This document shows, piece by piece, positions 53,401 through 59,400 of a stretch of DNA of 64,000 bases. The stretch covers positions 121,396,001 through 121,460,000 of the forward strand of contig NW_026262679.1 of NCBI RefSeq assembly GCF_021869535.1. The letters are read 5' to 3'. Within the stretch, counting starts at the first letter, position 1, and each line of letters begins with the position of its first letter. This DNA is from Mytilus californianus. Taxonomy: Eukaryota. The position numbers were made by a program, and so were the translations under genes. The notes below the pieces were generated by a model. That model saw only the letters and a program-made list of their open reading frames with translations, did no database searches and was not told the DNA's origin.

Positions 53401-56400
53401 TCTGTGTTGAAGACCGTACTTTGACCTATAAAGGTTTACTTTTATAAATTTTGACTTGGATGGAGAGTTGTCTCATTCACACTCATACCAGATCTTCTTA
53501 TATCCATTCATGTTCATGCCAATATACACACTAATATTGTTGGCTGTGCTTCGAACTAGATTTCATACAGCACTAGACAGGAAGACATGATTGTGTGCAA
53601 TGCCTAAAACAGACCTTTACAAAGCTTCAATGCATGAAAACAAAAGAAATATTTTAGTCCAGTTTCTAATGTGAGTGTTTTTTTCTTTTCAGTCTAGGAG
53701 ATATGATTCTAGAACAACAATTTTTTCCCCAGAAGGTAAGAATAGAAAGTAAAAAAAATAATATATACATGTTTAATCAAACACATTGTTCGCTCGTTCT
53801 TATTTATCATGTTAAAGTATTTATTGCTAGATACATGTACAAATTCTGCTTTATGACAAATTTATGTAAATTTTCTATTTTTTTCTCACATCGTTTTATT
53901 TCATCAAGTAATATTTTATATTTCTTTTGTTTGATAAAAGAATGGATTTGATAACAGTATTTATGTAATACAGGGAGGTTGTACCAAGTGGAGTATGCCA
54001 TGGAAGCAATAGGACATGCTGGAACTTGTTTAGGAATTTTAGCCAGTGATGGAGTGGTTTTAGCTGCAGAGAGAAGGAATACAAACAAATTGTTGGATGA
54101 AGTCTCATATTCAGAAAAAATCTATAATCTCAATGAGTAGGTTTTATTTGTACATAATATAACCATGTACAATTGAACCCTTGAAAATTATGATATCTCA
54201 AAAATGTAAATTTGAACTCAAAATTAAATTGTTGCTGAAAAACACCAGATTATAGAATATAGAAACAATAGTATTAATGAATATGGTTAATTAGATATAA
54301 AGCACTTTCATTGGTGATAATAGACATGATAGAGGAGATGTCGAGATGAAGATAGAAAAAATAAGGAAAGTCCCTGAACAGTGAGCAGTCACATTATTTC
54401 CTCTTCTGTGTATTCTGTTTATCTGGTTTATAGAAAGATGGAAGAATTAAAGGTTTCATTGCAATTATTCAGAATTTTCAGTAAATTTGAGTTTGAGTAA
54501 TGAATACAAAATATATTAAAGATTTATATGCTTTTGCTAGGTTTATTATAGAGGATAACTGTTTTGAAATACTCCAGATTATGAATAAAAATTTCCTGCT
54601 TGGTTGTTGATATTAAAAGTCATCTTTAAGTTTTTTTTCATTTGTGATTTTGTTTAGACTTATGGATATTCTATGCATTACTTAAATCTCAGCAGCTGGT
54701 TGTACGAACATGTCATTAGTCTAATGAGTCATTAAGTCTTCATTAGCCTAATGCATCATAAAGGCTTAATGAAGACTGAATGACCCATTAGGCTAATGCC
54801 ACGTTCGTACAACCGGCTGCAGGACTTCTTTTAATAAAAAATTAACAGTGTTTTGTAATATTTAAAGATTTAACATGACAGAGAATTAGAAAAAATAGCA
54901 TGAAGAAAATATATTTTTTTATATATTATTTGACAGTGATATGGCCTGTAGTGTAGCAGGAATAACATCAGATGCTAATGTATTGACCAATGAACTACGA
55001 CTTATAGCACAGAGGTAAGACTATTTAGTTTGAACTACTAACTTTTTCAGACAGGTTATTTTTGTTATTGGGTTGTAGTCTATTTGACATACCGGTATGC
55101 CCATCACCTTTTATTAATATGCACACTTGATTCTGTTATATAGGAGTGTTTGTTTTTTCATTAGAATGTTTGGTCTAAATAACTTTTTGCCATCTTAGCA
55201 ATTTTTTGTCTTTTGTGTCATTCTGGTAATCACAAGATTAGGGTGTTATTTGTAAACTTTTTTGGCAGATACTTTATATTTCTACTTGCATGCTAATGTT
55301 TTGACTTAAATCCTAGGACTGAATTTCCCCCCTTAAATTTCATTTATTGATCTCCTTTCCTTTTCTTTCCCTATAATATTCATTCTTTTTCTTACAGCCT
55401 TTTTATTGTTAAAGATGGTATGTTGCCCTCCAGATGTCATTCAGTTATTTTTGTTGTTTGTTGATTTCTGTATCTTCTTTTATTATTTATATAAAGACTT
55501 GAAATATACATACTAACTAAATTTTTGATAGACGAAAACCGTGAAGTGACCATGATAACCTATGATCTCATATTCTAAGATACCATTATTTTGAAAGCAA
55601 ACTATAGTTGATATTATATATATATATCAGTTAATGATGATCACATAATGGTTTGACAGTAAGCAACATGTTTGCAGAATAGATATTTCTCTGGACCAAA
55701 GGATCAACAAGCACTTCATATGATGTTTTTGTCATTACAGATATTTATTACAGTACCAAGAACCCATACCATGTGAACAGCTTGTTAGTACATTATGTGA
55801 TATCAAACAGGCTTATACACAGTTTGGAGGTAAATTACCTTTTTTATGCTAACACAGTATAAAGCACATACAGTAAAATATTACAAAAAAAAAACAAACT
55901 TAAAAATCCATACAGCTGACATAGATGAGGAATGAACTTAACATTTTGAGTAAGGACTCATTAAACTTTTTAAATATAAAATTAATATGTATAGTCAGAC
56001 TCACCAAAACTTTAAAAAACATGTTCAGGACTTGTCATATTGCATTGCTACAAGTATCCCTGATTACAGGTATTTTGAGCCATAAATATATCAGAATGAA
56101 CTTAAAATGTGTCTTAGTTAGTCTATGATACTGGTTGATGTCAAGGAAGATTTGATATCTATTAACATCATGCAGAAAAAGATGGATTATGGTTTTTAGT
56201 ACAACAGATGAAACCATATGATGCAGGGACTCACGATTTTTTGCCATGGCAAGTCCAACAGTGAGAAGAAAAAAATGTTATTGCTATGTAATTTATTTAA
56301 GTTTCTATGACGTATTAGTGCAAGGAAATAACATCAAATCGTTACTGTATGTGTATTGGATTTATTACAGGTAAACGACCATTTGGGGTATCTTTACTGT

Positions 56401-59400
56401 ATGTGTTTTATTACAGGTAAAAGACCGTTTGGTGTATCGTTACTGTATGTGTTTTATTACAGGTAAACGACCATTTGGTGTATCGTTACTGTATGTGTTT
56501 TATTACAGGTAAATGACCATTTGGTGTATTCTTACTGTATGTGTTTTATTACAGGTAAATGACAATTTGGTGTATTCTTACTGTATGTGTTTTATTACAG
56601 GTAAACGACCATTTGGTGTATCGTTACTGTATGTGTTTTATTACAGGTAAACGACCATTTGGTGTATTCTTACTGTATGTGTTTTATTACAGGTAAATGA
56701 CCATTTTGGTGTATTCTTACTGTATGTGTTTTATTACAGGTAAACAACCATTTGATGTATCCATACTGTATGTGTTGTATTACAGGTAAAAGACCATTTG
56801 GTGTATTCTTACTGTATGTGTTTTATTACAGGTAAATGACTATTTGGTGTATCTTTACTGTATGTGTTTTATTACAGGTAAACGACCATTCGGTGTATCA
56901 TTACTGTATGTAGGATGGGACAAACATTATGGATTCCAGTTATATCAGAGTGATCCCAGTGGTAATTATGGAGGATGGAAAGCTACATGTATAGGAAATA
57001 ACAGTGCTGTAAGTCATCACTTTTTTCTCACAAGTCATGTTCTAGTTTATATCTACATTGTTTAAAAAAAAATAATAATGCATCCATTTAGGAATACTCA
57101 GGGTTTTGATTTGGAGACTCTAGAAGCCCATATATAAAATTTTGAAAATTTTTGTCAATTATTTCTGAATTGATGAGGTGAAGTAGGTCCAATCAATTTG
57201 GAAGAACCTTTACATTTATTAATTTGGTTATCTCGACCAATTTGTAATTAGCAGAATTATTTGCATTAGTTATTGCAATTTCTGCGTATATCCTATTGTG
57301 AAAATTTGGAATACACAGTCCTACACCATCACACCCTAATATACATGCAGTAGCATATCAACTCAATGTAGTTAAAGATGTTTTCAGCTGAAATTCAAAA
57401 TAACAACAATTTAAAAAATGATGTTTTATTCAAAGCAGAATGTATAATGCATTGAATTTAGTATGTGTAGGAATAAAGATAGGATAAGGGCTTGTTTTGA
57501 GATAAATGTACAAGCATTTGAAATGAAACATTTTGCAGAAAGGATATGTGTTTTTTTTTTCAAATGAAGTATGTTTACTGTTTGAAAATGTATAAGAAGT
57601 AAAAAGAAATTAAAAATATTTTATCAGAAGTTTATATGAATTTTTTTTTAAATTATAAGAAATAAGGAGTTGATGAGCAAAATTTGTTAATGCATTTCAG
57701 TAAAACCCCAAAGGGTTACAAATTATGAAGGAAAAGTTGAAAGCCTGAAGCAGTAGTCGTTTATATATGTTTATTTTGATAATCATAGATGGATAATAAA
57801 GATAAGGTGAATCGATAGATTCAGAACGAGGAAAATAAAGTGATTTTGTATTTGTTTGAATTTCAGAATGCTGTATCAATGTTGAAACAAGAATACAAAG
57901 AAGGAGAAGTTAAACTAAAAGATGCCCTGAATTTAGCTATTAAAATTCTGAGTAAAACTTTAGATATGACTAAACTGACAGCTGAGAAAGGTAACATACA
58001 TTCATGAATTTAAATAATCTTGTGTACAAGCTACTGTGGATTTATTTACTTTCTTTGTTACCACTTTTTATACGACCGCAAAAAAATTTTGTGGTCTCGT
58101 ATATTGGTATGACGTTGGCGTCGTCGTCGTCCGAAGACACATTGGTTTTCGCACTCTAACTTTAGTTTAAGTGAATGGATCTCTATGAAATTTTACCATA
58201 AGGTTCAATACCACAAAAGGAAGGTGGGGATTGATTTTGGGGGTTATGGTACCAACAGTTAAGGAATTAGGGGCCAAAAATAAGCATTTTTGTAACTTCC
58301 AGACATAACTTGTGTGTTAGTGTATGGATCTCTCTGACATTGTACCACAAGGTTCCATATCACAAAGGGAATGCTGGGATTGATTTTGGGGGTAATTGCC
58401 TCCAAATTTTAGGAATTAGGGGCCAAAAAGGGGCAAAAAACAAGCATTTTTCTAGTTTCATGACAATAACTTGTTTGTAAGTGTATGGATCTCTCTGACA
58501 TTGTACCACAAGGTTCCATATCACAAAGGGAATGCTGGGATTGATTTTGGGGGTAATTGCTTCCAAATTTTAGGAATTAGGGGCCAAAAAGGGGCAAAAA
58601 ACAAGCATTTTTCTAGTTTCATGACAAAAACTTGTGTGTAAGTGTATGGATCTCTCTGACATTGTACCACAAGGTTCCATATCACAAAGGGAATGCTGGG
58701 ATTGGTTTTGGGGGAATAAGGGGCCAAAAAGGGGCAAAAAACAAGTATTTTTCTAGTTTCATGACAATAACTTGTGTGTAAGTGTATGGATCTTTATGAA
58801 ATTGTACTACAAGGTTCCATATCACAAAGGGAAAAGCTGGAATTGATTTTGGGGGTAATTGCCCAAAACGTTTAGGAAAAAGGGGACAAAAAGCGGCCAA
58901 AAATAAGCATTTTTCTAGTTTCCAGACAATAACTTGTGTTCAAGTGTATGGATCTCTCTGAAATTGTACTGCAAGGTACCATACCACAAAGGGAAGGCTG
59001 GGATTGAGTTTGGGGGTGATGAATCATAAGGGGGTTCAAAAAATTTGGGGGGGGGGGGATTTTTTTTTCCTTTTTTTTCTTTAAAATTTTTCCATTTTAA
59101 ATTGGTTATATCTGATTTATATATAAAAGCAAATAATAATGATATGGTTTGAATAGGTAAATTAAATTTTTTTAAGTTCTTAGACCACATTCATTCTGTG
59201 TCAGAAACCTATGCTGTGTCAAATATTTAATTACAATCCTAATTCAGTGCTGTATCAAGCTTGAATGTTGTGTCCATACTTGCCCCAACTGTTCAGGGTT
59301 CGACCTCTGCGATCGTATCAAGCTGCGCCCCAGCGGAGCATTTTATTGTGGATTGTAGAATCCTTGCAATTTATATTTGATTTTGAGGTTTTAACATAAT

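Follow-up and report, generated by a model that had tools for sequence, protein, structure and literature searches.

Twelve tandem copies of a splice acceptor at the intron 5/exon 6 boundary of PSMA4 in Mytilus californianus: a probable mirage minisatellite of which mature mRNA uses the last copy

The window analyzed here is a stretch of 64,000 nucleotides from Mytilus californianus (NCBI RefSeq assembly GCF_021869535.1, contig NW_026262679.1, positions 121,396,001 to 121,460,000 of the forward strand; all positions below are those of the window), and it carries the essential proteasome gene PSMA4 on the + strand, in which the acceptor of exon 6 stands at the end of a tandem array of near-identical copies of itself. 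The gene model was assembled from RNA junctions, loose read ends, and the sequence. It consists of exons at 53693-53735, 53974-54136, and 54937-55014, exon 5 (55741-55829, 89 nt, 3' end GGAG), exon 6 (56878-57008, 131 nt, 5' end GTAAAC), and exons at 57867-57990 and 60815-60954. Exon 5 is defined by the RNA junctions 55014/55741 and 55829/56878 and by its in-frame translation, and exon 6 by the junctions 55829/56878 and 57008/57867 and by the match of its peptide to PSMA4 chains in the PDB (E=8e-27). Intron 5 (55830-56877, 1048 nt), which is supported by both the RNA joint and the sequence, is of the GT..AG type with the donor GTAAAT; the donor of exon 6 is GTAAGT, with its first base at 57009. 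A glycine codon is divided G/GT across the exon 5/exon 6 junction. The spliced model encodes an intact protein of 256 residues, and the start codon lies on an exon upstream of the model.

Tandem Repeats Finder placed the array at 56361-56911, with a period of 46, 12.0 copies, 92% matches, no indels scored, and a score of 911. The unit comprises the last 12 nt of intron 5 and the first 34 nt of exon 6, resulting in 12 near-identical TTACAG/GTAAA sites. The AG/GT boundaries of units 1-12 are located at 56371, 56417, 56463, 56509, 56555, 56601, 56647, 56693, 56740, 56786, 56832, and 56878 (+ strand). Unit 8 is 47 nt long owing to one inserted T. The 14-mer core TTATTACAGGTAAA occurs 12 times in register (11 exact occurrences and one with a single mismatch), whereas chance alone would give 0.12 matches over the window, and the count of 12 was reached in 0 of 100 shuffled sequences. 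Eleven units, hereafter called decoys, make up the last 517 nt of intron 5 (56361-56877), and the twelfth (56866-56911) holds the real acceptor, with its AG at 56876-56877, and the first 34 nt of exon 6. At the left edge (56339-56360), a 16-nt partial unit representing the exon-derived tail (56339-56354) is followed by 6 extra bases, and this edge was also found in a contig of another organism (organism C, described below). An earlier reading of this DNA from its sequence alone had set the start of the array at 56338 and described 12 competing, near-identical acceptors. The start is correct when the partial unit and the 6 bases preceding unit 1 are included, and the number of acceptors is borne out by both the repeat detection and the core count. 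A search for older, decayed units farther upstream in intron 5 gave chance-level 10-nt matches only, no better than those in introns 4 and 6. A solitary ATTACAG/GTA is present in intron 5 at 56063-56072, 300 nt upstream of the array, a match at chance level in comparison with the control introns.

The choice among the 12 acceptors was examined in run X24, a stranded RNA-seq run of the poly(A)/cDNA type, of which about 6% was sampled as raw reads. The joint 55829/56878 was supported by 27 reads with 21 different start positions, a count similar to those of the neighboring joints 55014/55741 (37 reads) and 57008/57867 (41 reads); all three are of the GT..AG type. No joint from exon 5 to a decoy was present among the X24 joints, and no intronic reads were found in this mature-mRNA cDNA of modest depth. 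The read depth was 0 in all bins over decoys 1-10, and the slight depth in the last bin of the array corresponds to the first bases of exon 6 and the two ambiguous bases of the joint. The depth over exon 6 was about 45, and approximately 59 reads are estimated to be expected over a 46-nt insert at equal abundance. We estimate that decoy-containing mRNA amounts to less than about 5% at steady state. Mature mRNA uses the 12th acceptor exclusively. The earlier reading had recommended a count of the junctions between 55829 and every one of the 12 AGs. This count gave a clear answer as to the mature mRNA, in which only 56878 is joined, but not as to splicing intermediates, which are invisible in poly(A)-type cDNA. 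Another run, X1, was set aside as splicing evidence; it is labelled "RNA?", yet its contigs are unspliced and without joints, and it is uninformative.

The coding start of exon 5 (YLLQ, 55741-55753) contains TTTATTACAG, a 10-mer shared with the acceptor of the array. Its inner AG follows the real acceptor of exon 5 after 13 nt, which would be dropped if this AG were used. The exon 5 acceptor observed in the RNA was 55741 only (37 reads), with the inner AG unused.

Every unit of the array possesses a TTAC motif resembling a branch point (A at -21), an 8-nt U-rich tract, CAG, and GTAAA, and each appears from these elements to be a complete 3' splice site. The branch point predicted for the real acceptor falls within decoy 11, in the portion that derives from the exon. 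Variation is present at 12 of the 46 columns of the unit and requires at least 16 substitution events. The pattern of substitutions seems to fit neutral decay, because 7 of these 16 minimal events fall at two CpG dinucleotides. Selection on the AG/GT core was considered and rejected: the 14-nt core contains one of the 12 variable columns (hypergeometric P=0.05, not significant) and CAGGTAAA contains none (P=0.07, not significant), and CpG decay accounts for much of the difference. Unit 3 is identical to unit 6, and unit 4 to unit 8 once the 1-nt insertion of unit 8 is removed; unit 7 differs from unit 4, and unit 8 from unit 5, by one base. Comparison of the units thus shows a higher-order duplication of three units (138 bp), as expected for unequal exchange. 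An RNA structure that hides the decoys was also considered as a candidate, and was discarded (z=+1.5, with 93 of 100 shuffled sequences folding at least as well).

A search with the open reading frame (ORF) that crosses the boundary of exon 6 retrieved genomic ORFs from other animals, all of them distant relatives with an exon identity of about 80-84%, and seven of these loci (L001-L007) were compared with PSMA4 of the mussel. Over exons 5 and 6 the seven loci are 79-86% identical to the mussel gene, and over exons 4 and 7 they are 72-81% identical. All seven possess an intron at the same position and in the same phase, with a single acceptor, and no tandem repeat was detected in the two loci scanned for it (L001 and L004). 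The intron is ancestral, because its position and phase are common to the seven loci, and the array is lineage-specific. Exon 6 begins with GA or GC in these relatives and never with GT. The exon-initial GT in the mussel would then stem from a synonymous codon (GGT) that was multiplied together with the unit, and would not be an adaptation. A comparison of the array ORFs with a protein collection, aimed at other individuals or species, gave no candidate.

The structural features and the RNA evidence led us to favor, with a probability of roughly 75%, the interpretation that the array is a "mirage" minisatellite, i.e., a duplication of the intron-exon boundary in which only the copy continuous with exon 6 is used and the units decay neutrally. 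Mirages are tandem, minisatellite-like duplications of intron-exon boundaries and were named in amphioxus, where they occur in Adh3, the globin genes BflGb6 and BflGb9, troponin C, and PGBD5. As in a mirage, the repeats at PSMA4 are head-to-tail and of minisatellite type, the unit spans an RNA-confirmed junction (27 reads) together with a part of the coding sequence, and splicing is undisturbed, with 55829/56878 as the only joint and a depth of 0 over the decoys.

According to this interpretation, a 46-bp segment over the intron 5/exon 6 boundary would have been duplicated in tandem, and the array may have grown via unequal exchange or slippage, partly by three-unit steps, thereby adding about 0.5 kb to the ancestral intron. 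The real acceptor would win through exon definition and proximity. The last acceptor alone leads into the body of the exon and, 131 nt downstream, its strong donor GTAAGT, and a decoy should be definable only as a 46-nt piece, at or below the size of good internal-exon recognition. Internal exons below about this size are poorly recognized. Rare use of a decoy would lead to a premature stop, and such transcripts would probably be removed by nonsense-mediated decay (NMD).

Several points weigh against this interpretation. Between -12 and +34 the decoys hardly differ from the real site, and every one of them comes with a branch point and, 46 nt on, a good U1 site; their complete neglect is not obviously explained, exon definition being what we infer. 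The block comprising the branch point, the U-rich tract, and AG/GTAAA contains variable columns at 2 of its 28 positions, compared to 10 of 18 elsewhere, which may indicate constraint, though this contrast was drawn post hoc and CpG hot spots account for part of it. In addition, a shallow poly(A)/cDNA sample is blind to decoy use that is followed by NMD or re-splicing.

A second array in the window bears on the same interpretation. In AK6, identified by a peptide match to AK6 in the PDB (E=1.6e-15), the last coding exon has its acceptor in three tandem 56-bp copies at 16214-16385 on the - strand, with the boundary tttcag/GGG, and this array is read as a second acceptor-side mirage. Its boundary, AG/GG, cannot regenerate a donor, and the array cannot ratchet. 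The arrays of PSMA4 and AK6 are the only two in the 64-kb window with a period of 20-100 and at least three copies, and both are situated on splice acceptors. This suggests that such arrays may arise preferentially at splice junctions in this genome, which, if true, bears on how introns grow and move.

Among the alternatives, the one that survives best is a recursive-splicing ratchet, proposed in the sequence-only reading as a way in which mis-splicing is repaired: exon 5 is joined to a decoy, GGAG/GTAAA serves as a new donor, and the step is repeated until 56878 is reached, materially rescuing transcripts. In a variant, the GT of a decoy is spliced to any later AG, trimming the array in the RNA. 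Translation of spliced models showed that joining exon 5 to any of the 11 decoys creates a premature stop, as that reading had stated for every decoy. In four decoys the stop comes right after Lys (GTAAATGA, GGK followed by the stop) and in the other seven 15 residues later, in each case well upstream of later junctions. The reading had also held that the 5' splice site is rebuilt at the exon 5-decoy junction, and this proved correct: the regenerated GAG/GTAAA(C/T/A) equals the native GAG/GTAAAT in pairing with U1 (-6.9 kcal/mol, 6-7 of 9 matches; these energies are relative only), and the units at 56509, 56555, 56693, and 56832 begin with GTAAAT as claimed and are identical to the native donor through +6. 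CAG/GTAAA, a juxtaposed 3' and 5' splice site similar to YAG/GTRAGT, is present in 12 of 12 units, so that YAG/GTAAA at every unit boundary has the anatomy of published ratchet points. Furthermore, decoy-free mRNA is also what a working ratchet would be expected to leave.

The relative strength of the donors argues against the ratchet. The CAG/GTAAA of the next unit, 46 nt downstream, pairs better with U1 (-8.3 kcal/mol, 7-8 of 9 matches) than the regenerated donor does (-6.9 kcal/mol), the reverse of the order found at ratchet points. What sets the outcome in flies and mammals is whether the donor of the ratchet point or the one downstream prevails, and the ratchet-point donor is normally the stronger of the two. 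This rule, together with the stronger donor of the next unit, predicts inclusion of a 46-nt poison piece and not ratcheting. The exon junction complex (EJC) has been reported, also in flies and mammals, to repress regenerated donors on already spliced segments, and the ratchet runs against this finding. The true exon 5/exon 6 junction rebuilds the same donor, yet no joint of exon 5 to exon 7 was listed. No intermediates were present in the RNA reads, the library being of a type ill-suited to show them. A toy model, in which acceptors are chosen uniformly and a re-splicing step has to span at least 92 nt, brought 63% of the transcripts to the real site and left 37% at decoy 11; the latter product was absent from the RNA reads. 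Known ratchet points are conserved and are located in very long introns, whereas the array is lineage-specific and lies in an intron of 1 kb. Arrays without the GT are tolerated as well, as observed in AK6 and amphioxus.

The ratchet thus seems unlikely as a mechanism of rescue, and we regard the trimming variant as similarly doubtful; the proposed repair of mis-splicing found no support in the RNA and is contrary to what is known of donor competition and the EJC. Nor is a ratchet needed in order to explain why an essential gene tolerates the array, since the AG/GG array of AK6, the amphioxus mirages, and a human donor array in F7 (see below) are spliced correctly or tolerated. There is a small chance that an AG/GT array is "self-healing", in that a splice from a decoy GT, or from an exon 5-decoy junction, to a later AG recreates a perfect boundary. 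If this were true, a higher copy number should be tolerated in this mussel's AG/GT mirages than in its mirages lacking the GT.

The proposal that array length is a tunable control of PSMA4 output fared worse. According to this proposal, the decoys form a regulatory field of poison acceptors, by which a set fraction of the transcripts is destroyed. The premature stop that every decoy provides well before later junctions would suit such a role, as would the length of minisatellites, which is usually polymorphic and has been shown to be so in amphioxus. However, no decoy-spliced read was observed, which leaves the proposed control unsupported, there was no sign of length variation at PSMA4 or of a link to expression, and the substitution pattern looks neutral. 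We consider this role improbable.

That the array is an artefact of the assembly, or was collapsed or expanded in it, is scarcely credible, as the sequence-only reading had anticipated: although short-read contigs break inside the array and leave the copy number of 12 unverified, the units carry their own substitutions, and contigs of two further, independent data sets (organisms B and C) fit both edges and an inner stretch with 0-2 differences. These DNA-like contigs cover the left edge at 56236-56371 (no differences; organism C), the inner stretch at 56710-56831 (122 nt including three distinct units; 2 differences), and, at 56861-57019, the right edge with its continuation into intron 6 (2 differences). 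Neither the array nor the substitutions that mark its units can therefore be put down to the assembly. The copy number of 12 comes from the assembly; contig depth is no measure of copy number and was set aside as a guide to it.

In other data sets, single-base polymorphisms were found within the units at 56755 and 56900. The A>G variant at 56900, present in 24 of 40 RNA reads and in a DNA-like contig, changes the Ser codon of the real exon to TCG, as in decoys 2, 3, and 6, and the A>G variant at 56755 gives decoy 9 the consensus base again. Both variants would be explained either by ancestral alleles or by conversion of one unit by another.

Some other repeats were noted in the window. Immediately upstream of the array, at 56224-56275 in intron 5, is a short interspersed repeat. 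Contigs are about 10 times deeper over it than over its flanks, and a large number of them continue on either side into unrelated sequence. A satellite-like family of about 160 bp is found at 25822-26538, 58269-59017, and 63027-63997, with one of these arrays within PSMA4 intron 7, and another family, with repeats of 166-168 bp, occupies 35048-35665 and 60124-60710, of which the second array is again in intron 7.

The closest relatives of the PSMA4 array among known systems are the amphioxus mirages, of which Canestro et al. in 2002 reportedly gave the original account. In the BflGb6 array, the 3' end of an intron as well as the 5' portion of exon 2 is repeated. Many units of the amphioxus mirages keep AG/GT signals, splicing is normal by reverse transcription PCR, and alleles differ in copy number. 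The PSMA4 array resembles them in the duplication of a boundary including a coding part, in the location on the acceptor side that some of them share, and in the normal mRNA. Concerted evolution is displayed by the units of the amphioxus mirages. The differences are the mollusc host, the dimensions (46 bp x 12), and the fact that every boundary in PSMA4 is AG/GTAAA, matching the context of the upstream donor. Length polymorphism is a feature of the amphioxus arrays, whereas the PSMA4 array is known from a single copy-number state in the assembly. The earlier statement that an array of this kind is undescribed accordingly needs to be divided: the array type is known from amphioxus, and no paper was found that proposes a ratchet for one. 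Our literature search turned up no account of such arrays for Mytilus or any other mollusc, and on acceptor-side variable number tandem repeats (VNTRs) and duplicated acceptors it yielded nothing directly relevant beyond F7 and amphioxus. The PSMA4 array is, as far as we could find, a mirage in a new phylum and by itself no new mechanism; it adds a mollusc example to the repeat class named in amphioxus.

Two further systems share some features with the array. The ratchet points of Drosophila and vertebrates, together with the recursive-splicing exons (RS-exons), likewise exhibit a juxtaposed acceptor and donor, a cryptic piece of about 50 nt followed by a donor, and a regenerated donor. They are situated in very long introns, are ultraconserved and single, and usually have a stronger donor than the one downstream, whereas the PSMA4 array places 11 sites in a row in a 1-kb intron, is lineage-specific, and has the stronger donor downstream. 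Tandem duplication of an AGGT-containing segment is a model of intron gain (the Rogers model; Hellsten et al. 2011, PMC3265369). There, as here, the duplicated segment carries AG/GT, copies can be removed as an intron, and the original mRNA is restored. In contrast to that model, no new intron position was created in PSMA4; the duplication adjoins an intron that is ancestral by comparison with L001-L007 and lengthens it.

The 37-bp VNTR in intron 7 (IVS7) of the human F7 gene offers an instructive parallel on the other side of the intron: identical and functional pseudo-donors remain silent, and splicing takes the site that adjoins the exon (Borensztajn et al. 2006, PMC1557585). In both arrays the terminal element spans the exon-intron boundary and is accompanied by a row of silent pseudo splice sites. 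In F7 the array is on the donor side and 5'-to-3' scanning was shown experimentally, whereas the PSMA4 array is an acceptor-side one with a presumed rule of selection. The PSMA4 array can thus be regarded as the acceptor-side counterpart of the human F7 donor array, and with 12 near-identical acceptors in front of an essential proteasome exon, of which one is used, it constitutes a natural experiment on the choice of 3' splice sites.

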